Below, piece after piece: positions 1 through 19,244 of a DNA stretch of 64,000 nucleotides. The DNA is from Andalucia godoyi And28 (lineage: Eukaryota > Protista > Jakobida): NCBI GenBank assembly GCA_009859145.1, contig VRVR01000027.1, positions 259,060 to 323,059 on the forward strand, given 5' to 3'. The notes below the pieces were generated by a model that did not search any database, was not told the DNA's origin, and saw only the letters and a list, made by a program, of their open reading frames with translations. The translations under genes and the position numbers were made by a program. Numbering within the stretch: position 1 is the stretch's first letter; the number at the start of each line of letters is the position of its first letter.

Positions 1-154
1 TCACGTGACTACGTGGCTGGGCCGTGGGGAGCATGAAAACACCAGAATTCTTCGCTCTACCTCGAAACCTACAATTTGAAAATCACGTAACTGTCCTCTT
101 TGAGTTTGGTCATTGTTTCGCTTTTTTCTTGTTTGCGGACCTATCGTTGTTATC

Positions 155-3139
155 ATGAAATTCTCCTTGATCAGCTCATGGATTTGTTCCTTCGAAGATT
201 CGAAAATTGACAAGTTGAACTTTGATGTGACAAAAATTCTAGATCTTCTCGAAGAAACCATATCCTGGATTTTATTCAGTCATCGAAAACACGATCCCCT
301 TTCATTTCGGATTTATGTGGATGCTTTTTGGAAGAGCCGTATTTCCGCGCTCGTCACTCAAGGTGATGATGGTTTTCGGAAAATCCAACGTTACCTGAAA
401 CTTGATACATTTTGTGATCAGTGCCTTGGCGGTCGTAGGCCTCAGGGAAACTTTAAATCCGCTTCCAAATTATGGTCGGTATGGTTGGCATTGATTTCAC
501 AAGATCAGACAGCGACCTCACAATTTTGTATGTCGATGTCGAAAGACCTTGGACTTCTTCGCACGCAAATGTGTTCATTTATTGTTCTTACTTGCGAGTG
601 TATGTTTCGGGTGATCGAGATGAATAATTGTTCTATGAGCATCCTTCAGGGTTACCGTCCTTTCTTTGAAGTGATAATCAATGACGAGCAACTTGCTAAT
701 GATATGCCCAACGACATTATCCAATGCGCACTGTGTTTTGCAAACTATGTTATCACCCGGGCAAAGAATGCACCTGTTCTTCAAGATTGTCAAAATCTTT
801 TGAAGATGGCTTCTCAGTTCTGCCAGGTAGAATCATCCGGGGACACAGAATATGCTCGCAGATGGGTTCTTGCCAAAATGCTATTTTACAGCGCTTTAAT
901 CCGTCGTTCGAAGAAAGATTTCGAATCCAATCTTAGAAGATGTATGGAACTCGTGGATCTTCGAAGTTCCTGGAGTCATTGCAGACCGGAATTGCGCGAG
1001 AAAATGCGGATACTTTTGTTTAACGCTCAAGTGCAACATGACCTGGGGTTCTCCTGGACACCAAGTGACAAAGAAGTCGTCATTCTCTCTCATTCATCTT
1101 CAGGTCCCCTTTCTCCTCGAAAAACATCAAAAAAGCAAAAGCAAAATGATGAAGATCTCATGGAGAAACCCACACCCTTCAATCCTTCGCCTTCATGGTT
1201 TATTGAGCGAGAGAACTCTTCTTCCACTCTGCAGTCACTGAGGTTGAATCAAACATCCATGTCGGAATTCTGGACTGCTAGCTTTCATTTCTGCAGAGCA
1301 TCCTTTGAAAGCGGCTTGTCGTCTGGAAATTACGAAGATTTCCTGTTTTCTTTGTTTTGTTGCTTTCAGTGCTTCAAGCAGGTTTATCAACATGATACTC
1401 TTTTGATATCGAAATCTTTTCGCCCTTTTCTAGGTGTCTTCCTGTTTTCCGCTCAACATCTATGGCTTATTTCGACGGATCCTTTGCGGCAAGAAGTTCA
1501 AGATTGCCTTACTTTGACTTACAAATTGCGTTCAAAGCATGTGGATATATCCAGTTCTTTGATCTGGAAGCGCTTGGGTGTGTGGCTTTTCGACCATGCG
1601 TTAATACCGGTTCAAGATCTGATTTTTGACTCAAAGGATATGTTCCTTCATCATTTATGTGATCCAAACAGTCCTCATAACGCCAACGCGACCCATCAAC
1701 TTTTCCCGTCGATCAAATCATTAGATGTTGATGTGCAGCAAAAGTCCCTGAAGATTACTTTTGATGACAGCATCGTCATTTGGGACGCCTGGAATGATAT
1801 TTTACATCTCTCCATCTTTTGGAAATACCACATTCCGAGCTTCAGTAGCATCAAAGATGTTCTTTACGGCTTGTTGCAGCCTTCTATGTCGGTTGTTGCA
1901 CATGCTTTTGTAGGCGGTACTTCATACAAACTGCAGATTCGGAAAAACGGAATGGTTTTAAGTACTTTCTCAGAAGACGAAAACCTTTTCGCTTTGTTTG
2001 AGAGTATATATGAAGATGACACTTTGACATTGTCACAACTCATCGAAAAAGTGCAACTACTGGAATATCGCAGTATCATTCTCCAGTTCTTGTTTGATTT
2101 TTTGTCGAAGAAGGTGACCGGATTTCCTCTGTCTATTCCAGTATTGTCTGTATTTCGATCAAGAACATTATCATTGCTCAAAGGACGAGGCCTGAAGTGT
2201 TTGTATGAAGAAGATATCGAGAAGTCATATCAGTCAACATGGAGCAACTTCCCGGAGATTTCTAAAAAGTGTTTTCTCGACCTGACTAACCGTGAACTTG
2301 GCTGTGTTATTGGTCTTTCATCGTATTCGATCACAGAATATGGAAAATGGGTGTCGCGATGTGTATCGGACAATGGATATGTTCTCTTTGGATTTCTTTT
2401 CGATCTGTCAGAAAATGGAGACCATCTCAGCATTACGTTTGACTGTGCTGAAGACTATAATGACAAGGATTTGCGTGCGATGTTCCATGACCTGTGGAAA
2501 CGTTGTTTTCAAGTTGATTACGTGCCTCATTTGACAATCACACCTCGTCAAACGTTATACCAAAACGTTGTGCAGTCTACAATTCAACAGCTATCTAACA
2601 ACATGCAGACATTGCAGTCTCTCGAGGACTGTAAAAACGCTTGGGACGTCATGTATCAGTTTGGAAAAGGCAATTTGGATCGTCATCTCGATATTTTGAA
2701 TGTCGTTATATGGGTCATTATGCGGTCTTCGTGGGTGCGAAAGGATAAGTTGGAATTGGTCGATATTGCCATTCAAGATTTCGGGTTCGCAAGATTGATT
2801 GAAAAACACAGTGATCTCAACGATCTTTTGTGGTTGACCTTTGACGATGAAAAAAAGCCGAAAATCCCGTGGGACCTCACTGTGGATCAGGTGCTTTCTC
2901 GAGTAGACACTAGAGGATTCGAAATGCTTGCTTCAGACATGCAATGTTTCCGTGACAGTATCAAGGAAATGAGGAAAAATGGACGCAATGTTCTGTCTGA
3001 AGTCTTCAACCATGCTAAATGGTCGGATCGCGAAAAGTTTATTGCGACGAGGACTCTGAAAACTGCTGGGTTTTATTTTACAAACGAGCAAACAAAGCTT
3101 TTTGAACGATACAGGAAAGCCTTTTCTGAGTCTGTGTAG
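155..3139 (+). CDS. Orphan ~995-1008 aa protein, copy 1 (ORF open from 113; first ATG at 155)
   Basis: Long uninterrupted ORF ending in TAG. No recognisable motif apart from a basic patch (SPRKTSKKQKQ). Confidence 0.8.
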   Translation: MKFSLISSWICSFEDSKIDKLNFDVTKILDLLEETISWILFSHRKHDPLSFRIYVDAFWKSRISALVTQGDDGFRKIQRYLKLDTFCDQCLGGRRPQGNFKSASKLWSVWLALISQDQTATSQFCMSMSKDLGLLRTQMCSFIVLTCECMFRVIEMNNCSMSILQGYRPFFEVIINDEQLANDMPNDIIQCALCFANYVITRAKNAPVLQDCQNLLKMASQFCQVESSGDTEYARRWVLAKMLFYSALIRRSKKDFESNLRRCMELVDLRSSWSHCRPELREKMRILLFNAQVQHDLGFSWTPSDKEVVILSHSSSGPLSPRKTSKKQKQNDEDLMEKPTPFNPSPSWFIERENSSSTLQSLRLNQTSMSEFWTASFHFCRASFESGLSSGNYEDFLFSLFCCFQCFKQVYQHDTLLISKSFRPFLGVFLFSAQHLWLISTDPLRQEVQDCLTLTYKLRSKHVDISSSLIWKRLGVWLFDHALIPVQDLIFDSKDMFLHHLCDPNSPHNANATHQLFPSIKSLDVDVQQKSLKITFDDSIVIWDAWNDILHLSIFWKYHIPSFSSIKDVLYGLLQPSMSVVAHAFVGGTSYKLQIRKNGMVLSTFSEDENLFALFESIYEDDTLTLSQLIEKVQLLEYRSIILQFLFDFLSKKVTGFPLSIPVLSVFRSRTLSLLKGRGLKCLYEEDIEKSYQSTWSNFPEISKKCFLDLTNRELGCVIGLSSYSITEYGKWVSRCVSDNGYVLFGFLFDLSENGDHLSITFDCAEDYNDKDLRAMFHDLWKRCFQVDYVPHLTITPRQTLYQNVVQSTIQQLSNNMQTLQSLEDCKNAWDVMYQFGKGNLDRHLDILNVVIWVIMRSSWVRKDKLELVDIAIQDFGFARLIEKHSDLNDLLWLTFDDEKKPKIPWDLTVDQVLSRVDTRGFEMLASDMQCFRDSIKEMRKNGRNVLSEVFNHAKWSDREKFIATRTLKTAGFYFTNEQTKLFERYRKAFSESV

Positions 3140-3270
3140 ACACATGAGATGGCGCTTCGCACCTACACACACATCTTTCTCTATCGCTTCATTTTCCTGC
3201 ATTCTTTAGCGAGCGCTCTGACGGATTCTGGCGATATGGACACATGTGTTTCATCGATTTCCTTCAATTA

Positions 3271-4830
3271 TCAGTATAATTCTTTCTTTTTCGTGTCTGA
3301 ATCGAGTAAATCACCAGAGAGCGCGGATCGAGGGTACTCATACACTCGACAATTCTGAATATCATCAGGTAATTCACATATGTACCTCCGTTTTTCACGA
3401 ATCTGATACATATGAAACTTCCAATCCTTCCTTTCCTTGAAGCTGTTGTTGGGGACAGGCAGCATGTACTTCTGAATCATTCGACCTAGGTTGTTGGCCT
3501 TCGTTCGCCATAATGTGAAAAGATCCACGGAGGATACTGTTGTATCGATGTTTGGACCGAGATGCTCCGTCCACAAATCATGAAAAAGATCGGTAGCAAA
3601 TTTCTCGTCATGTATGGTTGCAATCAATTCTTGATCTTGCTCAAAGCTTCGATCGTTGAAATTGGCTGAACCAATGACCGCAATTTGCTTGTCAACAATC
3701 ATAAGTTTCGAGTGCACATAAATCATGCTACACGATTCGACAAGATATCCACTCTCTTGAGTTGATTGGCTTTTCAAGGAGTAATTCATTAACGCCGAAA
3801 ATGCGATGAAATCTACCACATCATCTCGCTTATCCTCATTCACGCGCGAGCTCACGTGCTCAATGAAGGCATCAATAGAAGTGCGAGTAGCAGCATGTAA
3901 CGGAGAACCCAACGACAAAGGACAGATTTCGGCATCGGGAAAGGCCGGTAAAAGGATCACAACTCTAAATGATTCGTTGTTTTCTACTGCTCGAACTAGA
4001 CGATCCGCCAACGCGGACATTGGCGTATCTCGAATTACTTCTCCTTCCTCATGGATGTGAAGACTGGAAAAATACTGATTTTCTACATATATCAATTCTT
4101 TCGCTGTATGAATGAGATGAATGTACTCCGCTGCAATTGGATGAGGAGTTTCAAAATCCTTCCGGAACGGATTCATGAAGAACCGAACCTTGGAATCCCG
4201 CGAGCATTTCGAAAAGTGATTTTCTCTCATATTCCTCAGAACCTGTACAGCATATTTGTTCTTCCCGAATGCGTGTGTAAGGCGATGGTAGGCATGGGAA
4301 CAAATCTCAGAGCCTGTTCCTTCAAATGAAACATTCAAGTCATGCCAAGGCAGTCGGGTGTCGTGAGCCCATCGTGGAAATAGCTTGTTATATACCCCGC
4401 GCGGAAATGGGACCGTTCCATGGAGTTGTGTATCATACCTATCTGGTAAAATATCGAGACCACCAAAGAATACAGTTCGATTGTCCACGACGACAATTTT
4501 CTCATGCCGGCTCCAGATGACACTTTCACTTAGACTAAACAATCTACTCATTTCTTTCACAAATAACCGTGATCTATGCGTAGAACATAGAAGCTTCCAT
4601 TCCTCGGCATCTGCTTTGATTTTCCAACAAACGATAAACCCACATGAATCTTTGTCTCGCTCCATAACATCGTTCAACGCCTGATGAAGCGCTCTGCCTT
4701 CTTTCAATTGAGTTAACGGATCCAAAGACAAGCCAATAATGATAAAGCATTTTCGACAACTTTGCAATGCTTTGTCAAGTGCCTCAAAATAACTGTTGCC
4801 GTCAACTAAAGATTGAATGGAGTTTTGCAT
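3271..4830 (-). CDS. Phospholipase D, eukaryotic two-HKD type, catalytic core only (copy 1)
   Basis: HKD1 RHEKIVVVDNRTVFFGGLD and HKD2 VHSKLMIVDKQIAVIGSANFNDRSF, plus RLPWHD and IYVENQYF motifs typical of PLD1/2 and plant PLDs. No PX/PH/C2 extension. Confidence 0.92.
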   Translation of the reverse strand: MQNSIQSLVDGNSYFEALDKALQSCRKCFIIIGLSLDPLTQLKEGRALHQALNDVMERDKDSCGFIVCWKIKADAEEWKLLCSTHRSRLFVKEMSRLFSLSESVIWSRHEKIVVVDNRTVFFGGLDILPDRYDTQLHGTVPFPRGVYNKLFPRWAHDTRLPWHDLNVSFEGTGSEICSHAYHRLTHAFGKNKYAVQVLRNMRENHFSKCSRDSKVRFFMNPFRKDFETPHPIAAEYIHLIHTAKELIYVENQYFSSLHIHEEGEVIRDTPMSALADRLVRAVENNESFRVVILLPAFPDAEICPLSLGSPLHAATRTSIDAFIEHVSSRVNEDKRDDVVDFIAFSALMNYSLKSQSTQESGYLVESCSMIYVHSKLMIVDKQIAVIGSANFNDRSFEQDQELIATIHDEKFATDLFHDLWTEHLGPNIDTTVSSVDLFTLWRTKANNLGRMIQKYMLPVPNNSFKERKDWKFHMYQIREKRRYICELPDDIQNCRVYEYPRSALSGDLLDSDTKKKELY

Positions 4831-5068
4831 TTGATTGTAAAAACAAGAAAAGATAGATAGATCTTAATTACCCAGACCGATAAATTTCCTTGTCAAAAAA
4901 GTGCGAAATGCGACAGCGCAACAGTTCTTTTGCACGTTGCATGAAGAGTTTCCAGGCGTCGCCGTTTGCCGACTGATCTTTGACGTTCGAATCTAGAATC
5001 AAATGACGCAGCTGTCTCCCGATCAATGGCACCTCCCAAGCCCGGTGAATTGCTGCAACCACCACTTA

Positions 5069-7237
5069 CACCTAAACATCACGGATTGTGTAAGCGATCC
5101 ATTTTTACAGTCAGGTATCCATTTTGAATTGTAAGGCTTGACGCCAAAGATCCAAAATTCCTTCTTTTTTTCCCGCGTTCTTCTTTATTTCGCTCAGCTG
5201 CACGGTGCACCGCTGTTTTGATGTTTTACGAGGAAAGTCAGACGGAGCGCTCACTTCGAATTTCCTAGTCATCATCATCATCTTGTCCTTCTCCCAGATG
5301 TTGTTGAACAGCATGGATGGTGGCGCCTGCTGGCTGTGGCTCTCCAGTGTCTGATTCTTCAACAGTCTCTTCGTGTTCTTCGCTGAGTCCTATCGATGCG
5401 TCCGTTCTTGCCGGGGTGTACTCCAACCCCCATTCTTTGAATTTGCGAATCGCCGCAGCTTCCTTCTCGTCTCCTGTGTGAACGTGGTCAAGAAGCCGCT
5501 GCGTTGATACCGGCAGACGGTCCAAGGAATCTATGAAGGACGACAGAGTATGATTCCAGGCACCTTTGATTCCAGAAGAAGTGACTTGGCGGTAGGCCTT
5601 GCATATCAAGTCGACAAGATTCTCCTTTGAATGCGGAAGAGTGTTCATCACAATCTGTGTGAAATACCATTTCCACATGCTGAAGACTTCCTCACACGGA
5701 TCGAGAAACGGCGAGTACGGGGGCAAAAAGCACATTTCAATGCCTTCTGGGATTTCAGATTTTTGCTTTGTGGATAGCACAGTTGTCCTGGACAATGAGC
5801 TGTTTTGGATCCCCTTCCTTGGGAATTCCTCCAGTCTTCTGCAACTCGGCGAAGAGATGTTTGAGAAAATCAGCGTATGTTTGCGCTTTGACGCTGCCGA
5901 GGTAGCACCCAAAATACGCGATCCTCTCTTTGTTCACGCCTCGATTGCAGAAACGTTCGGAAGGTCGAGCTTCCATTCGGCACCAGCGGTCTGCATCCTT
6001 TCACACTCAGGCCTTCGCTTGGGAACACGCAAACATTGAACGGTGTCTCGTCGATGAAGATTGCATTGTCGTACTCCGCACGTTTCACAGTCGACATCAT
6101 CTTTGCGTACTGGTACCTTGCTTCGATGATCCTCGGCAAATTTCTGCTTAGGGAGGCTGGATAGAAATCAGTTGCTCAGAATCCCAAATGTAAATGCATC
6201 CAGTGCTGTAGCACTGCAGCCCCGTTTTCCCGATCGTGCTGTTCCAGTTTTGGAAACTGCTTCTGCATCATTCCCACCAGGTCTTTGTAGTGGAGAGTGT
6301 TGTCGATGACCAGTGCCGCGCTGCCCAAAGAAGCTGGTCATCAAAAAATAGTCGAGGTCGTCGGCACTTGGGGATTCATCGCTCCGTGCGCGAGTGGCTG
6401 AAGCGGATCTTCTCCCCATCTCGCCCGCTTTTGCATCCGGTGAAATGTCTGGTACAGAGTCTCTTCTTTGTGATTCAAAACGACGGCCAGATCGTGCAAT
6501 GTGGATGTATCGTTGCGTATGCTGTTCCAGACAATCTCCTTGTCTCTCCGGCAGATGGTGTCCTTTGGTTGTCGATGCTGTGTCGCTTTCTCTTCTTCAC
6601 CTTCGTGCGACTCCTGGTCTTCCTGTTTTTTCTGTTCCACGCTGGTGTCAACGGCCACTGTCATTAAGAATTGACGAACCCCTGCTTGGATGGTGGCCTC
6701 TCTGGCTTTGTTTGCCAGCTCTGCTTTTGCAGTCGCTTCCTTATCTCTTTTTTCTTGCTCCTGAAGACGCAACCTCTGCGATTTCGACATGAAATCCGTC
6801 AGGGTGGTATGGCTGAGCTCTGGAAAGTGGTCTTCGGGCAGCTGGGGCATGTTCTGCTCTCCAACATCGGTGGAGACAACGAGTTGTACAGCCTCACTCG
6901 GTTGCTGCAAGAGCCTGGCTGCATTCACATTTGTTCTCCGTATCGCGGGTGACTTGACTGCCGGGGTACTTGCGTTGTTGTTACCTTGGCTGGTGCTTGG
7001 GGTTAGGTCCCTTGACGGACTCGCTGCAGCACTTCCTGGGGAACTTCCGGAATCGGAATGTTGGACAGGGATTCTTGCGTCTGTTGGGTCGCGGCTTTTC
7101 ATACTTTAAATGGATCGCATTCTTTGTCGGCCATGTTTCTCTGCTTATTCGGTTGCTGTTTTAGGGTAAAGCTGACAATTCAAAATGGATCTCTTACACC
7201 ATAAAATGGACCGCTTGTAATCCGCGATGTTTTGGTG
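5069..7237 (-). mobile_element. Tc1/IS630-like DNA transposon, copy 1, TA target duplication
   Basis: Imperfect ~70-bp TIRs (CACCTAAACATCACGGATT... and CACCAAAACATCGCGGATT...). TA at 5067-5068 and 7238-7239. Encloses a DDE transposase pseudogene. Confidence 0.88.
5265..7102 (-). pseudogene. DDE transposase (IS630/Tc1 superfamily), disrupted by stops and frameshifts, copy 1
   Basis: Motifs AIFIDETPFN, LIVQDNCAIHK and FLPPYSPFLDPCEEVFSMWK are spread over several frames, with in-frame TGA codons. Confidence 0.88.
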
Positions 7238-7505: not shown

Positions 7506-10500
7506 ATGTTTCAGCGATTATTTTTAACGTACAATGCTTTCAATAGCATCGAGAGTTCGTTGAGCGGCATTGATGCGGACATTCGAATCACTCCTTTACG
7601 GCAACAGTTGTCGGCAGTTCGGCAGTCTCTTGAACAATCCGTCCACGGTCGCAAGGCTGCTGTGGCATTTTTTGGAGAAACTGGTGCAGGAAAGAGTTGT
7701 CTCATCAATGCGTTGCTTGGCACTCCGCTTTGCCTGCCACCTGGTGCAGGGGAGTCTGGAACGCATGTGCCCGTCATTATCCAAAAGGATGATATGGTTG
7801 ATAAATACTCTGTCCGTCGAATTTTTTGGGATCCCAAGGAACTATTGGCGAATCTGTGGGAAGCTGCACGGAGTGCAAAGCTGGTATCAACAAAAGGTTG
7901 CGACCAAAAACTTACCACAACCGGTTTGTCCGATTCTTCTGAGAATTCAACAGCCGGTAATGATTCTCAAAGTTCAGATGTGTATGAAGATTGTTTGCCT
8001 ATGGCTGTTCCTCCGCAACTTCCTGTCCATGATTCTGCTATTTTGGAGGTTGCGGAACAAATATTTGGGAAAGCGACTCGTTTTGAAGACGACAAAAAGA
8101 AGAGATACAGGGAGGTCTTGCATTCTGTGAAACTCAATAGAGATTATCTTCAGAATCCTGAATATTTTGGCGATCCTCAAAGTGTTTTTGAATATATCCG
8201 CGATCATGTTGAGCGGAAAGCCAACACTGTCCATTCTATCCAGACGGACAAAGAGATTGAGAATTTCTTTTTGCGAAATGTTGTCATCAGAGGGCCATTC
8301 CCAGACGCAATGGTCCCTGACGGCATGGTGCTGATGGATATGCCCGGTCTCATGGACGGAGAATGGATGTCTCAGTTTGCTGTTGTGTCCGAACTGCACA
8401 GGTCTTCCAGAGCTGTATTGGTGGTCAAAAATGATACTCCAGGCAATCATCAAATGATCCAAGATTTATTTGCCTTGATATTTTCTCTCTGCTCTTCTTC
8501 ACATAATCTGAACCTGGTGAATAATTTCATCATAGCTATATCCCACAAGGGATGTAAGCCTCCTCAAGTTTCGCAGAAGTATGTGAAGGGGTACCTTGAA
8601 AACTTTGAAACTCAACGAATGAAAGCAAGCCCTGATTCAAACAGCTCGAAACCGACATTCGTTGCTGTCAACTCTGTGATGTGCCTGATTCACAAGAAAG
8701 GTGTTTCTCTAAAGCAGCCTGCGCTTCTGGAAATGTGGAATCTGGAAGCCGATGAATTCGATGACATTTTGCATAATGGCAAAACAACAGCTGTTGCGTA
8801 CATGGCCGACTTATGCGACATGTGTCAAAATTTGTTTTCCACAAATGTAGCCTCTAATTTGAGAGATTTGAAGAAACTTGTGTCATACTTGCGTGCGCAA
8901 TCAAGAGGTGATATTTATTCATCCGAGTTGTTTCGGATTGATTATGAGAAGCTCCGACTGTCTCTTGCTCGTTGTTTACTAAAAGGCCAACGTAGACTCG
9001 AAGACTACTGCAAAGAAACCAAAGACAGGGGACTTTTGCGTTTGGTCGCTCATGTTTCCAGATTCATGGAGGACGCGGAAGACGTTGATGAGACCATCTT
9101 AGTTCTCGCACGGCGTATATTTGTTGGATCTGATGCTCGCCCCCAAATATGGTGGTTTAAGTTTGTTTCATTTGCTTCACAAATTGCAAGGGAAGCATAT
9201 GATGATTGTCTCATTGCTGTCGAGAAGTTTGCTTCACACGCCGATGGACTAAGTGGTGTGCGCCCCGATGACTTTTTGGGATGGCATTGGACTCTTCGTT
9301 TGGAACTAGATCTTCTCTTCAATGGCGTTGCGTCAAGGGCCTCCGCACAGTTAGAAAATTCTGTAGAGATTCTGATGGATTCTATCCGAACTAGAACAGG
9401 AGATATTATTTTGCGAACAAACTCCATTTCTGCACAAGAGTCTGATTCTACTGAAGAAGCTGCAGTAGAAGAACAACAGGTTGTTCAGTTTCAGAATTTT
9501 GTGAAATCTCTGTCAGAAAACTTTTTTTCCGTGCAGAAGTTGGTGAATCTCTTTGATGACCTTCCGAAAAATCCGACATTGTGGACGAAGCGACCTAAAT
9601 CAATTTCAAGCACTATCTTTGATGAAATCACGAATGTTCTGGAATGTTTGGACTCACAGAGCACTTTCAGCGGTCAAGGCTTGATTGGTGACCTGACAGC
9701 TGCACTTCAGCAGTATCGCGAAAGGCTCAAGCAGTTGATGTTTCCACAAAAATGGTCTGCTGGCTCTGAGCCTGGAATCTTCCTAGCAAAATTACTTTCT
9801 GACCCTGCCAAATGTTCTCTTGCGTTAATTTGCAAGAAGCTCGGGGTGTTTTTTGCGCCGTATATGTTTGGCCATTTTGTGGACGAACGATCGTGCCCGA
9901 AGAATGAGCGCCTTGAGAATGCAATGATTGATTATTTCAGGAAGTCGGGTTGGGACGCAACAACTGTACTAAGGGATTTGCACTCGACAGATGACAACGA
10001 TTGCAGGTACACCTGGACTTGGTTTGATTTCCTTATCTCAATTCGTGATCAACTCCATGTTTGCGGATTTTTATTGGATCATGTTGAAGCAACGACGGAA
10101 TTCAAATTTTACCTCAAGCTATCTAGCGACGATGTGTTGGTGGCAGTGCACGATCGACTCTTGTCGCTGTGGCGTCGAAGGATGAACGGATTCACGTGCT
10201 CTCCCCCACCGCTTTGTTTAGTGAAGGAATCTTCATCTTTTGCTTTTGAAAGTGTAGAAGCTTCTGGAATGTCCTTCTGCGCAAATGCGTGTGTTGGAAG
10301 CACATCGAACACTTTGGGTGGCTTCATTTCCGCCGGTGGTCGTGTTTTTGGCGTTCTTTGTGGTCATCTTTTTCTGGACATCAAGGATGTTGTGCGAGTA
10401 GAATGTTGTAAGGTTCCTCTTTTTCCTGATGATGTTGTAAGTCCTACTTCTCAAATCCTTCCCTTATCTGCTGTGGTTATTGACAAGTTTGAGCTCACGG

Positions 10501-11303
10501 ATAGATTTTCTGGAAAGAAAAAAACGTGGACCGGAAAGAGTGATTCTGAATATCTTGATTTTGGAAATCAGATACCGCCACCGACTTCTTCCAAGATGTG
10601 CGTTGTTGCTGGTTCACATTATTGCCTCACAATCCCATCTTTTGTATCATTTTGTCGACAAGGTCGCGCTTCTCTGACGAAGAAAAACAAAACTTTTCCT
10701 CCCCAGCTCATTTCTCGTCCCACTGGAAATGATTTGGCCATTTTTGAAATCTCGGATGTTGACAAAAGCTTGTTGTTCAACTCGGGCAAATTGACTCCTC
10801 TTCTGATGCCCATCGGGACAGAATTGGAAACTTCTACTATTCGGTGGCCTTTTTCTCAGTTTTTTATCCAAGATCCTCTTTTATCCATTTGTGATTTTCT
10901 CACTCAAGCCAGGCGACTTCAGTGTCGATTTGAGTGTTCAAAATTTGGGCTGTCGAGCGGATGGACTGTTGGTTTTCTGGATTCTGTTGCCCCCGTTGGA
11001 AGTTCTCCTCAAGGGTATAATTTTCCGTCGCTTTTGAAGATCAGAGCAGACGTTTCTGGTTCATGTTGCGGTCGGGTATTGTCAGGACCAGGAGATTGTG
11101 GTGCATTATGGATAGTTACAAGAGTGGTATGTCCAAGCATCGTTTCTCAACAAATATCTGATTATGCGCGGTCTTTAGTGAATGTGATAATTGGGGTTCA
11201 CATTTCTGGAGGAACTGAATTGGATTCTTCTGTATTTGCGCGGGCTCTTCCGTCTGAAATATTTATTTCCCAACTCTTTAACTCCGTTGGCAATCTGCAG
11301 TAA
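7506..11303 (+). CDS. Dynamin-like P-loop GTPase fused to a C-terminal trypsin-fold (NAL1/Ssy5-like) protease with Cys nucleophile
   Basis: G1 GETGAGKS (aa 57-64) with LINALLG, and G3 DMPG (aa 278-281). Protease motifs TLGGFI..VLCGHLF (H954), NDLAIFEI (D1076), CSKFGLSSGWTVG and SGPGDCGALW (C1198, TGT at 11097-11099). Confidence 0.8.
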   Translation: MFQRLFLTYNAFNSIESSLSGIDADIRITPLRQQLSAVRQSLEQSVHGRKAAVAFFGETGAGKSCLINALLGTPLCLPPGAGESGTHVPVIIQKDDMVDKYSVRRIFWDPKELLANLWEAARSAKLVSTKGCDQKLTTTGLSDSSENSTAGNDSQSSDVYEDCLPMAVPPQLPVHDSAILEVAEQIFGKATRFEDDKKKRYREVLHSVKLNRDYLQNPEYFGDPQSVFEYIRDHVERKANTVHSIQTDKEIENFFLRNVVIRGPFPDAMVPDGMVLMDMPGLMDGEWMSQFAVVSELHRSSRAVLVVKNDTPGNHQMIQDLFALIFSLCSSSHNLNLVNNFIIAISHKGCKPPQVSQKYVKGYLENFETQRMKASPDSNSSKPTFVAVNSVMCLIHKKGVSLKQPALLEMWNLEADEFDDILHNGKTTAVAYMADLCDMCQNLFSTNVASNLRDLKKLVSYLRAQSRGDIYSSELFRIDYEKLRLSLARCLLKGQRRLEDYCKETKDRGLLRLVAHVSRFMEDAEDVDETILVLARRIFVGSDARPQIWWFKFVSFASQIAREAYDDCLIAVEKFASHADGLSGVRPDDFLGWHWTLRLELDLLFNGVASRASAQLENSVEILMDSIRTRTGDIILRTNSISAQESDSTEEAAVEEQQVVQFQNFVKSLSENFFSVQKLVNLFDDLPKNPTLWTKRPKSISSTIFDEITNVLECLDSQSTFSGQGLIGDLTAALQQYRERLKQLMFPQKWSAGSEPGIFLAKLLSDPAKCSLALICKKLGVFFAPYMFGHFVDERSCPKNERLENAMIDYFRKSGWDATTVLRDLHSTDDNDCRYTWTWFDFLISIRDQLHVCGFLLDHVEATTEFKFYLKLSSDDVLVAVHDRLLSLWRRRMNGFTCSPPPLCLVKESSSFAFESVEASGMSFCANACVGSTSNTLGGFISAGGRVFGVLCGHLFLDIKDVVRVECCKVPLFPDDVVSPTSQILPLSAVVIDKFELTDRFSGKKKTWTGKSDSEYLDFGNQIPPPTSSKMCVVAGSHYCLTIPSFVSFCRQGRASLTKKNKTFPPQLISRPTGNDLAIFEISDVDKSLLFNSGKLTPLLMPIGTELETSTIRWPFSQFFIQDPLLSICDFLTQARRLQCRFECSKFGLSSGWTVGFLDSVAPVGSSPQGYNFPSLLKIRADVSGSCCGRVLSGPGDCGALWIVTRVVCPSIVSQQISDYARSLVNVIIGVHISGGTELDSSVFARALPSEIFISQLFNSVGNLQ

Positions 11304-11824: not shown

Positions 11825-13993
11825 CACCAAAACATCGCGGATTACAAGCGGTCCATTTTATGGTGTAAGAGATCCATTTTGAATTGTCAGCTTTACCCTA
11901 AAACAGCAACCGAATAAGCAGAGAAACATGGCCGACAAAGAATGCGATCCATTTAAAGTATGAAAAGCCGCGACCCAACAGACGCAAGAATCCCTGTCCA
12001 ACATTCCGATTCCGGAAGTTCCCCAGGAAGTGCTGCAGCGAGTCCGTCAAGGGACCTAACCCCAAGCACCAGCCAAGGTAACAACAACGCAAGTACCCCG
12101 GCAGTCAAGTCACCCGCGATACGGAGAACAAATGTGAATGCAGCCAGGCTCTTGCAGCAACCGAGTGAGGCTGTACAACTCGTTGTCTCCACCGATGTTG
12201 GAGAGCAGAACATGCCCCAGCTGCCCGAAGACCACTTTCCAGAGCTCAGCCATACCACCCTGACGGATTTCATGTCGAAATCGCAGAGGTTGCGTCTTCA
12301 GGAGCAAGAAAAAAGAGATAAGGAAGCGACTGCAAAAGCAGAGCTGGCAAACAAAGCCAGAGAGGCCACCATCCAAGCAGGGGTTCGTCAATTCTTAATG
12401 ACAGTGGCCGTTGACACCAGCGTGGAACAGAAAAAACAGGAAGACCAGGAGTCGCACGAAGGTGAAGAAGAGAAAGCGACACAGCATCGACAACCAAAGG
12501 ACACCATCTGCCGGAGAGACAAGGAGATTGTCTGGAACAGCATACGCAACGATACATCCACATTGCACGATCTGGCCGTCGTTTTGAATCACAAAGAAGA
12601 GACTCTGTACCAGACATTTCACCGGATGCAAAAGCGGGCGAGATGGGGAGAAGATCCGCTTCAGCCACTCGCGCACGGAGCGATGAATCCCCAAGTGCCG
12701 ACGACCTCGACTATTTTTTGATGACCAGCTTCTTTGGGCAGCGCGGCACTGGTCATCGACAACACTCTCCACTACAAAGACCTGGTGGGAATGATGCAGA
12801 AGCAGTTTCCAAAACTGGAACAGCACGATCGGGAAAACGGGGCTGCAGTGCTACAGCACTGGATGCATTTACATTTGGGATTCTGAGCAACTGATTTCTA
12901 TCCAGCCTCCCTAAGCAGAAATTTGCCGAGGATCATCGAAGCAAGGTACCAGTACGCAAAGATGATGTCGACTGTGAAACGTGCGGAGTACGACAATGCA
13001 ATCTTCATCGACGAGACACCGTTCAATGTTTGCGTGTTCCCAAGCGAAGGCCTGAGTGTGAAAGGATGCAGACCGCTGGTGCCGAATGGAAGCTCGACCT
13101 TCCGAACGTTTCTGCAATCGAGGCGTGAACAAAGAGAGGATCGCGTATTTTGGGTGCTACCTCGGCAGCGTCAAAGCGCAAACATACGCTGATTTTCTCA
13201 AACATCTCTTCGCCGAGTTGCAGAAGACTGGAGGAATTCCCAAGGAAGGGGATCCAAAACAGCTCATTGTCCAGGACAACTGTGCTATCCACAAAGCAAA
13301 AATCTGAAATCCCAGAAGGCATTGAAATGTGCTTTTTGCCCCCGTACTCGCCGTTTCTCGATCCGTGTGAGGAAGTCTTCAGCATGTGGAAATGGTATTT
13401 CACACAGATTGTGATGAACACTCTTCCGCATTCAAAGGAGAATCTTGTCGACTTGATATGCAAGGCCTACCGCCAAGTCACTTCTTCTGGAATCAAAGGT
13501 GCCTGGAATCATACTCTGTCGTCCTTCATAGATTCCTTGGACCGTCTGCCGGTATCAACGCAGCGGCTTCTTGACCACGTTCACACAGGAGACGAGAAGG
13601 AAGCTGCGGCGATTCGCAAATTCAAAGAATGGGGGTTGGAGTACACCCCGGCAAGAACGGACGCATCGATAGGACTCAGCGAAGAACACGAAGAGACTGT
13701 TGAAGAATCAGACACTGGAGAGCCACAGCCAGCAGGCGCCACCATCCATGCTGTTCAACAACATCTGGGAGAAGGACAAGATGATGATGATGACTAGGAA
13801 ATTCGAAGTGAGCGCTCCGTCTGACTTTCCTCGTAAAACATCAAAACAGCGGTGCACCGTGCAGCTGAGCGAAATAAAGAAGAACGCGGGAAAAAAAGAA
13901 GGAATTTTGGATCTTTGGCGTCAAGCCTTACAATTCAAAATGGATACCTGACTGTAAAAATGGATCGCTTACACAATCCGTGATGTTTAGGTG
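11825..13993 (+). mobile_element. Tc1/IS630-like transposon, copy 2 (inner end abuts TG, not TA)
   Basis: Mirror of 5069-7237. TA at 13994-13995, but 11823-11824 is TG. Confidence 0.88.
11960..13797 (+). pseudogene. DDE transposase pseudogene, copy 2
   Basis: Same lesions as copy 1: TGATGA at 12719-12724, a further in-frame TGA (LHLGF*ATDF), and frameshifts near RPLV, NVSAI and HKAK. Confidence 0.88.
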
Positions 13994-14231
13994 TAAGTGG
14001 TGGTTGCAGCAATTCACCGGGCTTGGGAGGTGCCATTGATCGGGAGACAGCTGCGTCATTTGATTCTAGATTCGAACGTCAAAGATCAGTCGGCAAACGG
14101 CGACGCCTGGAAACTCTTCATGCAACGTGCAAAAGAACTGTTGCGCTGTCGCATTTCGCACTTTTTTGACAAGGAAATTTATCGGTCTGGGTAATTAAGA
14201 TCTATCTATCTTTTCTTGTTTTTACAATCAA

Positions 14232-15791
14232 ATGCAAAACTCCATTCAATCTTTAGTTGACGGCAACAGTTATTTTGAGGCACTTGACAAAGCATTGCAA
14301 AGTTGTCGAAAATGCTTTATCATTATTGGCTTGTCTTTGGATCCGTTAACTCAATTGAAAGAAGGCAGAGCGCTTCATCAGGCGTTGAACGATGTTATGG
14401 AGCGAGACAAAGATTCATGTGGGTTTATCGTTTGTTGGAAAATCAAAGCAGATGCCGAGGAATGGAAGCTTCTATGTTCTACGCATAGATCACGGTTATT
14501 TGTGAAAGAAATGAGTAGATTGTTTAGTCTAAGTGAAAGTGTCATCTGGAGCCGGCATGAGAAAATTGTCGTCGTGGACAATCGAACTGTATTCTTTGGT
14601 GGTCTCGATATTTTACCAGATAGGTATGATACACAACTCCATGGAACGGTCCCATTTCCGCGCGGGGTATATAACAAGCTATTTCCACGATGGGCTCACG
14701 ACACCCGACTGCCTTGGCATGACTTGAATGTTTCATTTGAAGGAACAGGCTCTGAGATTTGTTCCCATGCCTACCATCGCCTTACACACGCATTCGGGAA
14801 GAACAAATATGCTGTACAGGTTCTGAGGAATATGAGAGAAAATCACTTTTCGAAATGCTCGCGGGATTCCAAGGTTCGGTTCTTCATGAATCCGTTCCGG
14901 AAGGATTTTGAAACTCCTCATCCAATTGCAGCGGAGTACATTCATCTCATTCATACAGCGAAAGAATTGATATATGTAGAAAATCAGTATTTTTCCAGTC
15001 TTCACATCCATGAGGAAGGAGAAGTAATTCGAGATACGCCAATGTCCGCGTTGGCGGATCGTCTAGTTCGAGCAGTAGAAAACAACGAATCATTTAGAGT
15101 TGTGATCCTTTTACCGGCCTTTCCCGATGCCGAAATCTGTCCTTTGTCGTTGGGTTCTCCGTTACATGCTGCTACTCGCACTTCTATTGATGCCTTCATT
15201 GAGCACGTGAGCTCGCGCGTGAATGAGGATAAGCGAGATGATGTGGTAGATTTCATCGCATTTTCGGCGTTAATGAATTACTCCTTGAAAAGCCAATCAA
15301 CTCAAGAGAGTGGATATCTTGTCGAATCGTGTAGCATGATTTATGTGCACTCGAAACTTATGATTGTTGACAAGCAAATTGCGGTCATTGGTTCAGCCAA
15401 TTTCAACGATCGAAGCTTTGAGCAAGATCAAGAATTGATTGCAACCATACATGACGAGAAATTTGCTACCGATCTTTTTCATGATTTGTGGACGGAGCAT
15501 CTCGGTCCAAACATCGATACAACAGTATCCTCCGTGGATCTTTTCACATTATGGCGAACGAAGGCCAACAACCTAGGTCGAATGATTCAGAAGTACATGC
15601 TGCCTGTCCCCAACAACAGCTTCAAGGAAAGGAAGGATTGGAAGTTTCATATGTATCAGATTCGTGAAAAACGGAGGTACATATGTGAATTACCTGATGA
15701 TATTCAGAATTGTCGAGTGTATGAGTACCCTCGATCCGCGCTCTCTGGTGATTTACTCGATTCAGACACGAAAAAGAAAGAATTATACTGA
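14232..15791 (+). CDS. Phospholipase D, copy 2
   Basis: Translation identical to 3271-4830. Confidence 0.92.
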   Translation: MQNSIQSLVDGNSYFEALDKALQSCRKCFIIIGLSLDPLTQLKEGRALHQALNDVMERDKDSCGFIVCWKIKADAEEWKLLCSTHRSRLFVKEMSRLFSLSESVIWSRHEKIVVVDNRTVFFGGLDILPDRYDTQLHGTVPFPRGVYNKLFPRWAHDTRLPWHDLNVSFEGTGSEICSHAYHRLTHAFGKNKYAVQVLRNMRENHFSKCSRDSKVRFFMNPFRKDFETPHPIAAEYIHLIHTAKELIYVENQYFSSLHIHEEGEVIRDTPMSALADRLVRAVENNESFRVVILLPAFPDAEICPLSLGSPLHAATRTSIDAFIEHVSSRVNEDKRDDVVDFIAFSALMNYSLKSQSTQESGYLVESCSMIYVHSKLMIVDKQIAVIGSANFNDRSFEQDQELIATIHDEKFATDLFHDLWTEHLGPNIDTTVSSVDLFTLWRTKANNLGRMIQKYMLPVPNNSFKERKDWKFHMYQIREKRRYICELPDDIQNCRVYEYPRSALSGDLLDSDTKKKELY

Positions 15792-15922
15792 TAATTGAAG
15801 GAAATCGATGAAACACATGTGTCCATATCGCCAGAATCCGTCAGAGCGCTCGCTAAAGAATGCAGGAAAATGAAGCGATAGAGAAAGATGTGTGTGTAGG
15901 TGCGAAGCGCCATCTCATGTGT

Positions 15923-18907
15923 CTACACAGACTCAGAAAAGGCTTTCCTGTATCGTTCAAAAAGCTTTGTTTGCTCGTTTGTAAAATAAAACCCAGCAGT
16001 TTTCAGAGTCCTCGTCGCAATAAACTTTTCGCGATCCGACCATTTAGCATGGTTGAAGACTTCAGACAGAACATTGCGTCCATTTTTCCTCATTTCCTTG
16101 ATACTGTCACGGAAACATTGCATGTCTGAAGCAAGCATTTCGAATCCTCTAGTGTCTACTCGAGAAAGCACCTGATCCACAGTGAGGTCCCACGGGATTT
16201 TCGGCTTTTTTTCATCGTCAAAGGTCAACCACAAAAGATCGTTGAGATCACTGTGTTTTTCAATCAATCTTGCGAACCCGAAATCTTGAATGGCAATATC
16301 GACCAATTCCAACTTATCCTTTCGCACCCACGAAGACCGCATAATGACCCATATAACGACATTCAAAATATCGAGATGACGATCCAAATTGCCTTTTCCA
16401 AACTGATACATGACGTCCCAAGCGTTTTTACAGTCCTCGAGAGACTGCAATGTCTGCATGTTGTTAGATAGCTGTTGAATTGTAGACTGCACAACGTTTT
16501 GGTATAACGTTTGACGAGGTGTGATTGTCAAATGAGGCACGTAATCAACTTGAAAACAACGTTTCCACAGGTCATGGAACATCGCACGCAAATCCTTGTC
16601 ATTATAGTCTTCAGCACAGTCAAACGTAATGCTGAGATGGTCTCCATTTTCTGACAGATCGAAAAGAAATCCAAAGAGAACATATCCATTGTCCGATACA
16701 CATCGCGACACCCATTTTCCATATTCTGTGATCGAATACGATGAAAGACCAATAACACAGCCAAGTTCACGGTTAGTCAGGTCGAGAAAACACTTTTTAG
16801 AAATCTCCGGGAAGTTGCTCCATGTTGACTGATATGACTTCTCGATATCTTCTTCATACAAACACTTCAGGCCTCGTCCTTTGAGCAATGATAATGTTCT
16901 TGATCGAAATACAGACAATACTGGAATAGACAGAGGAAATCCGGTCACCTTCTTCGACAAAAAATCAAACAAGAACTGGAGAATGATACTGCGATATTCC
17001 AGTAGTTGCACTTTTTCGATGAGTTGTGACAATGTCAAAGTGTCATCTTCATATATACTCTCAAACAAAGCGAAAAGGTTTTCGTCTTCTGAGAAAGTAC
17101 TTAAAACCATTCCGTTTTTCCGAATCTGCAGTTTGTATGAAGTACCGCCTACAAAAGCATGTGCAACAACCGACATAGAAGGCTGCAACAAGCCGTAAAG
17201 AACATCTTTGATGCTACTGAAGCTCGGAATGTGGTATTTCCAAAAGATGGAGAGATGTAAAATATCATTCCAGGCGTCCCAAATGACGATGCTGTCATCA
17301 AAAGTAATCTTCAGGGACTTTTGCTGCACATCAACATCTAATGATTTGATCGACGGGAAAAGTTGATGGGTCGCGTTGGCGTTATGAGGACTGTTTGGAT
17401 CACATAAATGATGAAGGAACATATCCTTTGAGTCAAAAATCAGATCTTGAACCGGTATTAACGCATGGTCGAAAAGCCACACACCCAAGCGCTTCCAGAT
17501 CAAAGAACTGGATATATCCACATGCTTTGAACGCAATTTGTAAGTCAAAGTAAGGCAATCTTGAACTTCTTGCCGCAAAGGATCCGTCGAAATAAGCCAT
17601 AGATGTTGAGCGGAAAACAGGAAGACACCTAGAAAAGGGCGAAAAGATTTCGATATCAAAAGAGTATCATGTTGATAAACCTGCTTGAAGCACTGAAAGC
17701 AACAAAACAAAGAAAACAGGAAATCTTCGTAATTTCCAGACGACAAGCCGCTTTCAAAGGATGCTCTGCAGAAATGAAAGCTAGCAGTCCAGAATTCCGA
17801 CATGGATGTTTGATTCAACCTCAGTGACTGCAGAGTGGAAGAAGAGTTCTCTCGCTCAATAAACCATGAAGGCGAAGGATTGAAGGGTGTGGGTTTCTCC
17901 ATGAGATCTTCATCATTTTGCTTTTGCTTTTTTGATGTTTTTCGAGGAGAAAGGGGACCTGAAGATGAATGAGAGAGAATGACGACTTCTTTGTCACTTG
18001 GTGTCCAGGAGAACCCCAGGTCATGTTGCACTTGAGCGTTAAACAAAAGTATCCGCATTTTCTCGCGCAATTCCGGTCTGCAATGACTCCAGGAACTTCG
18101 AAGATCCACGAGTTCCATACATCTTCTAAGATTGGATTCGAAATCTTTCTTCGAACGACGGATTAAAGCGCTGTAAAATAGCATTTTGGCAAGAACCCAT
18201 CTGCGAGCATATTCTGTGTCCCCGGATGATTCTACCTGGCAGAACTGAGAAGCCATCTTCAAAAGATTTTGACAATCTTGAAGAACAGGTGCATTCTTTG
18301 CCCGGGTGATAACATAGTTTGCAAAACACAGTGCGCATTGGATAATGTCGTTGGGCATATCATTAGCAAGTTGCTCGTCATTGATTATCACTTCAAAGAA
18401 AGGACGGTAACCCTGAAGGATGCTCATAGAACAATTATTCATCTCGATCACCCGAAACATACACTCGCAAGTAAGAACAATAAATGAACACATTTGCGTG
18501 CGAAGAAGTCCAAGGTCTTTCGACATCGACATACAAAATTGTGAGGTCGCTGTCTGATCTTGTGAAATCAATGCCAACCATACCGACCATAATTTGGAAG
18601 CGGATTTAAAGTTTCCCTGAGGCCTACGACCGCCAAGGCACTGATCACAAAATGTATCAAGTTTCAGGTAACGTTGGATTTTCCGAAAACCATCATCACC
18701 TTGAGTGACGAGCGCGGAAATACGGCTCTTCCAAAAAGCATCCACATAAATCCGAAATGAAAGGGGATCGTGTTTTCGATGACTGAATAAAATCCAGGAT
18801 ATGGTTTCTTCGAGAAGATCTAGAATTTTTGTCACATCAAAGTTCAACTTGTCAATTTTCGAATCTTCGAAGGAACAAATCCATGAGCTGATCAAGGAGA
18901 ATTTCAT
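15923..18907 (-). CDS. Orphan ~995-1008 aa protein, copy 2 (ORF open from 18949)
   Basis: Translation identical to copy 1. Confidence 0.8.
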   Translation of the reverse strand: MKFSLISSWICSFEDSKIDKLNFDVTKILDLLEETISWILFSHRKHDPLSFRIYVDAFWKSRISALVTQGDDGFRKIQRYLKLDTFCDQCLGGRRPQGNFKSASKLWSVWLALISQDQTATSQFCMSMSKDLGLLRTQMCSFIVLTCECMFRVIEMNNCSMSILQGYRPFFEVIINDEQLANDMPNDIIQCALCFANYVITRAKNAPVLQDCQNLLKMASQFCQVESSGDTEYARRWVLAKMLFYSALIRRSKKDFESNLRRCMELVDLRSSWSHCRPELREKMRILLFNAQVQHDLGFSWTPSDKEVVILSHSSSGPLSPRKTSKKQKQNDEDLMEKPTPFNPSPSWFIERENSSSTLQSLRLNQTSMSEFWTASFHFCRASFESGLSSGNYEDFLFSLFCCFQCFKQVYQHDTLLISKSFRPFLGVFLFSAQHLWLISTDPLRQEVQDCLTLTYKLRSKHVDISSSLIWKRLGVWLFDHALIPVQDLIFDSKDMFLHHLCDPNSPHNANATHQLFPSIKSLDVDVQQKSLKITFDDSIVIWDAWNDILHLSIFWKYHIPSFSSIKDVLYGLLQPSMSVVAHAFVGGTSYKLQIRKNGMVLSTFSEDENLFALFESIYEDDTLTLSQLIEKVQLLEYRSIILQFLFDFLSKKVTGFPLSIPVLSVFRSRTLSLLKGRGLKCLYEEDIEKSYQSTWSNFPEISKKCFLDLTNRELGCVIGLSSYSITEYGKWVSRCVSDNGYVLFGFLFDLSENGDHLSITFDCAEDYNDKDLRAMFHDLWKRCFQVDYVPHLTITPRQTLYQNVVQSTIQQLSNNMQTLQSLEDCKNAWDVMYQFGKGNLDRHLDILNVVIWVIMRSSWVRKDKLELVDIAIQDFGFARLIEKHSDLNDLLWLTFDDEKKPKIPWDLTVDQVLSRVDTRGFEMLASDMQCFRDSIKEMRKNGRNVLSEVFNHAKWSDREKFIATRTLKTAGFYFTNEQTKLFERYRKAFSESV

Positions 18908-19244
18908 GATAACAACGATAGGTCCGCAAACAAGAAAAAAGCGAAACAATGACCAAACTCAAAGAGGACAGTTACGTGATTTTCAAATTGTAGGTTTCGA
19001 GGTAGAGCGAAGAATTCTGGTGTTTTCATGCTCCCCACGGCCCAGCCACGTAGTCACGTGAGACTGTCGTTGCAAAAATCGGTTTTTCCCCGCCTTTTTT
19101 TTGAGGAGTGCACAGCATCCAGCATCAACTATTGATTTTATACAGTGCAGCGACCGAAATTCACCAAAACAACAATTTCCAGAAGTTGATTGCTGCCTCA
19201 GCTTTGTTTTTCTGTTCAACATCTTCTTCTTTTTCTCACGGCAA

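Follow-up and report, generated by a model that had tools for sequence, protein, structure and literature searches.

A dynamin-superfamily G domain joined to a putative chymotrypsin-type domain in a near-orphan protein of the jakobid Andalucia godoyi

Can a dynamin-like GTPase and a protease be carried by one polypeptide in a jakobid, and does that protease depend on a cysteine nucleophile? The question is raised by an open reading frame (ORF) in a 64,000-nucleotide stretch of Andalucia godoyi And28 DNA, contig VRVR01000027.1, positions 259,060 to 323,059, which is referred to here as the window. The ORF lies at 7506..11303 on the plus strand, begins with ATG and encodes 1265 aa followed by a stop codon. 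A sequence-only reading of this DNA had proposed that it encodes an N-terminal dynamin-like GTPase, a long helical stalk and a trypsin-fold protease with a catalytic cysteine. The explanation that we favour, and consider rather likely when taken as a whole, is that the ORF encodes a real, intact and soluble protein of 1265 aa that belongs to a very small, undescribed eukaryotic family.

Every position in the 1265-codon frame is open, with 0 stops and 0 frameshifts over 3.8 kb, and a frame of this length at 44% GC cannot arise by chance. A position check placed the ORF and all of the motifs named in the sequence-only reading at exactly the residues given for them: the G1 motif (P-loop) GETGAGKS at aa 57-64, including K63 (7674..7697, plus strand), the G3 motif DMPG at aa 278-281 (8337..8348, plus strand), H954 in the context LCGHLF, D1076 in NDLAIFEIS, and GDCG at aa 1196-1199. 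No transmembrane segment was found in the protein, for which the highest 19-residue Kyte-Doolittle mean was 1.43, and on this basis it is judged to be soluble.

When 1.84 billion representatives were scanned exhaustively with HMMER, with aa 66-1265 as the query and a threshold of E ≤ 0.001, four proteins were returned, the best at E 1.9e-15. The relatives are P0001 (1186 aa), P0002 (1173 aa, N-terminally incomplete), the A. godoyi protein P0003 (1291 aa, ANDGO_08437 in EukProt) with its second, near-identical copy P0005 (ANDGO_00703), and P0004 (511 aa), which consists of the GTPase part only. The gene for P0004 is directly followed on its contig by an ORF of 652 aa comprising the middle region and the C-terminal domain, the two ORFs being 32 nt apart and in different frames (L003 922-4448; L004 743-4269). 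Two independent samples show this 511/652-aa split in exactly the same form, their sequences agreeing at 100% over 4.5 kb, so that a random error does not explain it; as far as the sequence can tell, the split could be a genuine split gene, a programmed frameshift or an unusual intron. P0004 and the second ORF of L003 (652 aa) were accordingly analysed as separate pieces.

The full layout of GTPase, middle region and C-terminal domain is common to the relatives, which fall into three lineages together with the window protein. The first comprises P0002 and P0003, which share 36% pairwise identity over their full length; the second comprises P0001 and P0004, with 38% identity in the N-terminal part, plus the second ORF of L003; and the third is the window protein alone, at 24-27% pairwise identity to the others (21-25% alignment-wide). 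The Andalucia members are annotated as hypothetical proteins only, and the window protein itself is absent from the EukProt catalogue. The gene models of P0003 and P0005 differ solely in a five-residue N-terminal extension. The pair suggests a recent duplication, unlike the window gene, which is present as a single copy between duplicated arms. The metagenome relatives lie on contigs of 6-19 kb and ∼50% GC with ordinary eukaryotic genes alongside, these being genes for diacylglycerol kinase, dUTPase, Vta1, TMEM234, an M16 peptidase and CIAPIN1; their setting is chromosomal and non-viral. As judged from these sequences, the known members are the A. godoyi proteins, those of one uncultured eukaryote and the window protein, which makes the latter nearly an orphan.

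Other searches added no members. Neither the whole protein nor a five-sequence alignment gave a match in word-indexed homologue searches, even though the collection searched contains the relatives, and the index was probably swamped. Two metagenome scans returned pattern matches only, none of which were confirmed, and three scans of IMG/VR, run with the protein or one of two family alignments, likewise returned pattern matches among which no relative was confirmed. AgDFP2, the “novel dynamin-related protein” of the Andalucia genome paper, was considered as a possible member and rejected, being a different protein (_08796). The literature yielded no description of a dynamin-protease fusion. With no published counterpart found and the layout conserved in the relatives, the earlier proposal that the architecture corresponds to no described family stands: the parts are of known kinds, and their combination and the C-terminal family are new.

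By sequence, the N-terminus of the protein belongs to the fusion-type (Fzo/BDLP) branch of dynamin-superfamily G domains, with G1-G3 intact. The domain (aa 53-315; 7662..8450, plus strand) matches Pfam Dynamin_N at 33.7 bits against a gathering cutoff of 27, with P0001 scoring 32.3 bits and the Andalucia relative P0003 scoring 23.5 bits, under the same cutoff. A profile of four N-terminal domains compared with the PDB matched mitofusin-1 (E 2.8e-6), the Campylobacter jejuni DLP 5owv (2.9e-4), mitofusin-2 (3.3e-4) and BDLP (4.6e-3), these matches spanning mainly the G1-G2 region. The nearest type is therefore mitofusin/BDLP, and the dynamin-like GTPase of the sequence-only reading was borne out by both the Pfam match and the mitofusin-1 match. 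Residues G57, G62, K63 and S64 of G1 are invariant in the family, as are D278, P280 and G281 of G3 (family pattern D-x-P-G), and the invariant T86 in the context S-G/T-T-H/R-V-P-V is the G2 candidate. The name GTPase is less secure at G4, where the motif [NT]KxD is not conserved and the aligned strand reads AISHKG, VTYFDA, VKLLMR, VKVLER and CTFFGP, so that specificity for GTP is not assured. The only PADLOC matches to the G domain of the window protein were to LeoA/B/C; these are generic P-loop matches and were rejected as evidence for a role in defence.

Between the two domains lies a family-specific middle region of ∼550 aa (aa ∼346-895; 8541..10190, plus strand) for which no database match was obtained, including with Pfam at E ≤ 10. 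It can be aligned among the relatives at low identity. The region, which the sequence-only reading called a long helical stalk, is presumed to be helical; its composition, with low glycine plus proline, a slightly raised helix propensity and no transmembrane segment, is compatible with this.

The C-terminal domain (aa 896-1265; 10191..11300, plus strand) is beta-rich and carries the His, Asp and nucleophile motifs of the chymotrypsin type, as seen from invariant columns and hhalign. In the alignment of this domain (23-26% identity), 25 of ∼370 positions are invariant, including H954, D1076, G1196, D1197, G1199, W1202 and H1232. Five collinear blocks occur in chymotrypsin order and context, namely x-F/Y-A-V-T-x-G-H-L/V, N/x-D-F/L-A-hydrophobic, K/x-x-G-x-S/T-S/T-G-x-x-x-G, P-G-D-[S/C]-G-A-x-W-I/V-I and G-V/A-I-I/V-G-x-H-S/T, and in relaxed hhalign comparisons each was paired with its counterpart in alpha-lytic protease/SGPB and HtrA. 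The candidate catalytic His is the invariant H954 (10365..10367, plus strand; context xFAVTxGH(L/V)), which the relaxed comparison pairs with the HtrA His block, and the candidate catalytic Asp is the invariant D1076 (10731..10733, plus strand), whose ND(L/F)A(I/F/L) block is aligned to the Asp block of HtrA, S1A and S1E. With the nucleophile at position 1198, the triad named in the sequence-only reading is thus present, as sequence motifs, in chymotrypsin order.

The choice of the catalytic His is complicated by a second candidate. H954 and D1076 are 122 residues apart, ∼80 above the usual distance, and the His-to-Asp insertion of ∼80 aa contains an invariant H1038-x-C1040 strand (10617..10625, plus strand). 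H1038 lies 38 residues ahead of D1076, which is the canonical spacing, and default local hhalign places its strand on the catalytic-His strand of HtrA, although seven residues out of register. Two invariant histidines compete for the catalytic role, which is a point against the favoured explanation; H954 is preferred because its context is the textbook one. Also invariant are C1144 (10935-10937) and C1188 (11067-11069), in a domain that contains 16 cysteines in 365 aa. Together with H1038, C1040 and a CxxC-like pair that precedes the nucleophile in the relatives, these residues may form a structural metal (zinc) site, a feature that is present in some viral chymotrypsin-fold proteases. Downstream of the nucleophile, H1232 (11199..11201, plus strand) belongs to an invariant G-x-H block at the position of the S1-pocket wall. 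A His at this position is typical of Glu/Gln-specific chymotrypsin-fold enzymes, and by analogy H1232 might, speculatively, be a pointer to the P1 specificity.

Where the family pattern G-D-[S/C]-G-A-x-W has its nucleophile, the window protein has C1198, encoded by TGT (11097..11099, plus strand). All four independent relatives (P0001, P0002, P0003/P0005 and the second ORF of L003) have GDSG, and GDCG is found in the window only. The Ser codons of the relatives are TCT, TCT and TCA, the Andalucia Ser having been read at the protein level, and TGT differs from TCT by a single C>G substitution in the middle of the codon. Serine in four of four relatives, with TCN codons and a one-base difference, indicates that Ser is the nucleophile of the family and that Cys is, within the present sampling, private to the window lineage. 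A cysteine nucleophile as the signature of the family, as put forward in the sequence-only reading, is therefore given up, the survey of homologues having returned the very result that was named beforehand as refuting it. The Cys could also be a base-calling error, the locus being present as a single copy. On the other hand, the residue may be real and functional in the window copy. The frame is unbroken over 3.8 kb, and none of the other invariant residues has been lost.

What the private Cys means for the window copy can be explained in two ways, of which the stronger is that this copy is crippled or dead, either as a pseudo-protease or at an early stage of gene decay, with the Cys being neutral, degenerative or a sequencing error. 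The gene occupies the spacer of a perfect palindrome with broken DDE transposase pieces nearby, in a compositionally distinct region rich in repeats and transposons; its GC content at third codon positions (GC3) is 0.41, compared with 0.58 for the EukProt-annotated ORF further right; and the protein catalogue of the organism lacks it but contains that neighbouring ORF. These observations, along with the restriction of the Cys to the window, speak for such a copy. A copy released from constraint does not, however, readily account for 3.8 kb of sequence with no stop or frameshift in which all of the other invariant family residues are kept, and this combination argues that selection still acts on the protein, including its protease motifs. 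We regard a crippled or dead copy as doubtful, though as an explanation to be taken seriously.

Unlikely, in our view, is the proposal closest to the sequence-only reading, that the protein really is a cysteine protease of the chymotrypsin fold, the cellular counterpart of viral 3C/3CL enzymes, in which Cys1198 serves as the nucleophile and oligomerisation of the GTPase activates the protease as a sensor-executioner. The GDCG sequence falls exactly at the nucleophile position with H954, D1076, G1196, D1197, G1199 and H1232 intact in an ORF uninterrupted over 1265 codons, the G-x-H block is shared with 3C-like and with Glu/Gln-specific proteases, and an identity of 21-27% to the relatives would have left time for the active site to adapt. 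Set against these are the Ser of all four independent relatives, only a single base away, the lack of any relative in the viral contig collections and the fact that no Cys-bearing orthologue is known. In TEV protease, the one well-studied chymotrypsin-fold case, exchange of the nucleophile cost ∼10^4-fold activity until further mutations compensated (PMC4576821). An enzyme whose nucleophile has only just been replaced should accordingly work poorly, which favours a crippled copy and speaks against a working cysteine enzyme.

The C-terminal domain was compared with known members of clan PA. The HtrA reference consisted of DegP, DegQ and DegS from the annotated E. coli K-12 record and 80 further HtrA loci from bacterial genomes; 119 S1E proteins and three S1A enzymes served as the other hhalign references, and the sequences for alpha-lytic protease, streptogrisin B, chymotrypsinogen A, elastase and trypsin match the PDB over their full length. 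Against the deep HtrA profile the family scored 25.0 untrimmed and 25.6 with its insertions trimmed (P 0.007-0.017), the trimmed alignment covering 112 columns from the Asp block to past the nucleophile, and the positive control, S1A against the HtrA profile, scored 26.1. The family scores were not reached by any of 70 column shuffles, which averaged 13.6-13.8 (z 5.5 and 4.2), or by reversed alignments, at 10-11, and 12 decoys, cut from real sequence outside the protease part of these same proteins, scored 12.6-16.6. When scored with the family hidden Markov model (HMM), DegP, DegQ and DegS were each above all 50 of their own shuffles, which was not the case for the S1E and S1A sequences. By these scores the C-terminal domain appears to be as similar to HtrA as trypsin is, a between-family level of similarity in clan PA and no more. 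We conclude that the domain, of ∼330-370 aa, is probably a divergent chymotrypsin fold of PA-clan, HtrA-like type.

Several results weigh against this conclusion. The C-terminal domain is unmatched by Pfam, NCBIfam, PADLOC and PHROGs at E ≤ 10 in every member, whether Ser- or Cys-bearing, and no protease was found for it in the PDB by phmmer or by hmmsearch with the family profile. The hhalign probability of the HtrA match is low in absolute terms, at 2.7-5.4%, and the comparisons with S1E and S1A are marginal (probability 0.7-3.5%, P 0.02-0.09). AlphaFold2 modelled the domain with a mean predicted local distance difference test (pLDDT) of 30.0 from the single sequence and of 33.3, with a predicted template-modelling score (pTM) of 0.35, on a four-sequence alignment from which the Andalucia sequence was left out, and a Foldseek search of the PDB with the latter model returned noise (best E ∼1). 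The low confidence of AlphaFold2 stems from too few sequences. Foldseek rows for DegP, Deg5 and the norovirus protease, at E 3-5, were rejected as evidence. Shallow hhalign references were uninformative, since even true homologues reached only ∼1% with them. A close affinity to S1E (alpha-lytic/streptogrisin) was considered and rejected, the deep S1E profile giving 0.7% despite a striking likeness of motifs, and trimming of the family insertions did not rescue the comparison with S1E or S1A. The trypsin-fold C-terminus of the sequence-only reading is therefore upheld in part, through the five blocks and an HtrA score at the level of the control, and lacks the recognition by HMM libraries and the PDB. 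Its suggested likeness to NAL1/Ssy5 falls away, as neither Peptidase_S64 nor any other Pfam model of the PA clan (Trypsin, Trypsin_2 and others) matched the C-terminal domain of any family member at E ≤ 10.

Such failures of recognition would be natural if the domain were not a protease at all, and were instead a family-specific beta-rich domain of another fold, with motifs that match those of proteases by chance; a module for binding, for instance of metal, would be one example, and a Ser hydrolase with a different fold another. Its size, ∼150 aa above that of classical chymotrypsin-fold domains, and the conserved richness in Cys and His (H1038, C1040, C1144 and C1188) are compatible with this, and G-D-S-G-A also fits the small-x-Nu-x-small elbow of alpha/beta-hydrolases. 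Coincidence is, however, hard to reconcile with five blocks in canonical order and context (GH, D-hydrophobic-A, GxSSGxxxG, GDSGAxW and GxHSxG), with an HtrA score equal to that of a true PA-clan control and above the shuffled, reversed and real-protein nulls, or with an invariant His-Asp-Ser that follows the order of chymotrypsin and not that of alpha/beta-hydrolases. In both AlphaFold2 runs, moreover, strands flank the motifs as they do in the chymotrypsin fold, albeit at low confidence. A non-protease domain thus appears distinctly unlikely.

The gene stands in an unusual setting. Self-comparison of the window revealed a perfect inverted repeat with a left arm at 1..7237, which is cut by the window start, and a right arm at 11825..19061; the arms are 100% complementary over 7,237 bp, and the spacer of 4,587 bp is unique, with the gene discussed here as its only ORF, in agreement with the earlier description of it as the only single-copy gene at the centre of the palindrome. 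The repeat could have arisen by an inverted duplication that is very recent or has undergone gene conversion; it could also be part of a subtelomere or an artefact of the assembly. Each arm contains an ORF of 1008 aa (113-3139, plus strand; 15923-18949, minus strand) with no Pfam, PHROGs or PADLOC match, and a protein of the PLD superfamily with two HKD motifs (PLDc_2, PLDc; 3271-4830, minus strand; 14232-15791, plus strand), for which the PADLOC matches to DrmC are generic PLD matches. Short overlapping ORFs at 5111-6139 (minus strand) and 12923-13951 (plus strand) have the look of a broken Tc1/mariner-type DDE transposase, with the motif PPYSPFLDPCEE; the match of these pieces to Pfam DDE_3 (E 0.0015, 18.8 bits) is under the cutoff. 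To the right of the palindrome, a stretch of 92 aa at 19615-19863 (minus strand) shares 30% identity with aa 855-941 of the protein (E 8e-4 to 4e-3 within the window). It was rejected as a paralogue, as the match stops at LGGFV where the His block would begin and no protease domain follows; it is either a tiny paralogue remnant or chance.

Further right lies a divergent pair of large protein-kinase genes (20249-24723, minus strand; 24834-28286, plus strand). A tandem repeat of 252 bp (21187-22344) underlies a long TPR_12/TPR_10 array in the first of them. Beyond the stop codon the array resumes in a separate ORF of 294 aa, and this kinase-TPR gene may be interrupted. A ResIII/DEAD helicase is encoded at 35762-37513 (minus strand), and a serine recombinase with a Resolvase N-terminal domain, assigned by PHROGs to integrase/invertase, at 42647-44026 (minus strand). 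The helicase and the recombinase represent mobile-element or virus-like content in a eukaryotic window. Three arrays of one 91-102-nt satellite (GCTTATGTAAAATCGAGATCAC...), with 3-12 copies each (38265-38760, 45136-46295 and 56910-57557), bracket the recombinase region, and a separate repeat of 93-111 nt at 41472-41897 gives repetitive ORFs on both strands. An ORF of 318 aa at 57692-58648 (plus strand) exactly matches a protein that EukProt alone lists, which shows the source to be a eukaryote whose proteome has been catalogued, and no exact catalogue match was obtained for the protein discussed here or for nine other long ORFs of the window.

The ORFs of the window are long, intron-free and of low density, and a scan of the window gave no transfer RNAs and no Rfam matches. 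GC3 is 0.41-0.45 for the gene discussed here, the kinases, the PLD gene and the 1008-aa ORF, compared with 0.58 for the ORFs at 51950-53731 and 57692-58648. This compositional break between the left 30 kb and the region at 50-60 kb may mean that the left part is a younger or foreign island. Andalucia has a small genome with hardly any introns, and the assembly, as published, excludes subtelomeric scaffolds that contain “transposon/viral-like” sequences (PMC7050145). That omission, and the serine recombinase, ResIII helicase, DDE remnants, satellite arrays and palindrome of the window, might suggest that a virus or mobile element carries the gene as cargo and that the protease part was taken from a virus, instead of belonging to a cellular family, but the relatives lie among ordinary housekeeping genes, three IMG/VR scans gave no relative, and the recombinase and helicase are >24 kb from the gene, making this explanation very improbable indeed.

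If the C-terminal domain is a divergent chymotrypsin-type protease, as we favour, a way in which the two ends of the protein might work together can be proposed by analogy, although the mechanism of an oligomerisation-activated protease is entirely inferred. Dynamin-superfamily proteins are known for nucleotide-dependent dimerisation of their G domains and for higher-order assembly, oligomerisation switches on HtrA proteases, and induced proximity does so for caspases. In the same manner, the G domains of this protein would dimerise or oligomerise in a nucleotide-dependent way, the assembly would bring the tethered protease domains together and concentrate them, allowing activation in trans, and the protease so switched on would cleave itself or a substrate. 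The outcome would be a single-chain effector made of a nucleoside triphosphatase (NTPase) switch and a protease, which would fit the general logic of an NTPase switch plus protease effector seen in apoptosis and in bacterial conflict systems. No observation made here links the family to immunity or cell death, and the neighbourhood of the gene in the window, with its kinase-TPR genes, PLD genes and mobile-element debris, is suggestive at most.

The most far-reaching version of this proposal is that jakobids evolved an independent single-chain switch and executioner, in which a mitofusin-type GTPase, assembled on a trigger such as a membrane, an organelle or an invader, activates its own tethered protease in a manner resembling GBP-caspase and the apoptosome, and in which the window copy has undergone a functional switch from Ser to Cys (TCT>TGT) of a kind otherwise known only between viral PA-clan families. 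Taken jointly, these propositions would have to be called improbable. Should the C-terminal domain be an active protease, a dynamin GTPase of the membrane-remodelling or fusion type would directly control a protease within one polypeptide, and the short list of NTPase-gated proteases would gain a new member, in a group that matters for the reconstruction of early eukaryotes. The Ser-bearing relatives and the Cys-bearing window copy would provide a natural test case for nucleophile exchange in the chymotrypsin fold. If the Cys turns out to be nothing but an error, or to mark a dead variant, the finding reduces to an orphan family of few members whose domain architecture is novel.

Among known systems, the G domain is of the same branch as those of mitofusin/Fzo1, BDLP, C. 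jejuni DLP1/2 and LeoA, the best profile matches in the PDB being mitofusin-1/-2, 5owv and 2j68. As in mitofusin and BDLP, G1, the G2 Thr and G3 are present and the G domain is followed by a long non-globular, probably helical region. In contrast to these proteins, the window protein has no transmembrane or paddle segment, the family has no conserved G4, and its helical region has no detectable similarity to theirs. To our knowledge, no member of the mitofusin/BDLP branch has a C-terminal protease-like domain.

For the C-terminal domain, the best match at the profile level is HtrA/DegP (MEROPS S1C, Pfam Trypsin_2), with the His, Asp and nucleophile blocks aligned, and control triggered by oligomerisation in HtrA is of the same kind as that proposed here by analogy. 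The family differs in having no Trypsin_2 match and no PDZ domains, in the His-Asp insertion of ∼80 aa with its invariant H-x-C, in reading GDSGAxW where HtrA reads GNSGGAL, and in the G-x-H block after the nucleophile, so that the similarity is at the level of the clan and not of the family. The viral 3C and 3C-like proteases of clan PA(C) are likened by motif only: G-x-C-G stands at the nucleophile position of a probable chymotrypsin-fold domain, with the G-x-H block after it, in the window protein only, whereas the Cys is not conserved, four relatives having Ser, and no relatives were found in the viral contigs scanned. With Ssy5 (S64) and NAL1 only a concept is shared, that of an intracellular chymotrypsin-type protease restrained by a very large N-terminal region, which is here an NTPase and not a prodomain of the Ssy5 type.

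The closest parallels in logic are the apoptosome and caspases, GBP-caspase-4, and the bacterial conflict systems centred on GTPases or STAND proteins, with their trypsin-like or caspase-like effectors; in all of these a nucleotide-driven, oligomerising switch is coupled to a protease effector. Bacterial GTPase-centred systems with peptidase effectors have been described (Kaur et al., 2020; PMC7159879), in an account that mentions dynamin 0 times. The conflict systems are built on other NTPases (STAND, DO-GTPase, MoxR) and are mostly encoded by several genes, whereas in the family described here the switch and the putative effector lie together on one eukaryotic polypeptide.

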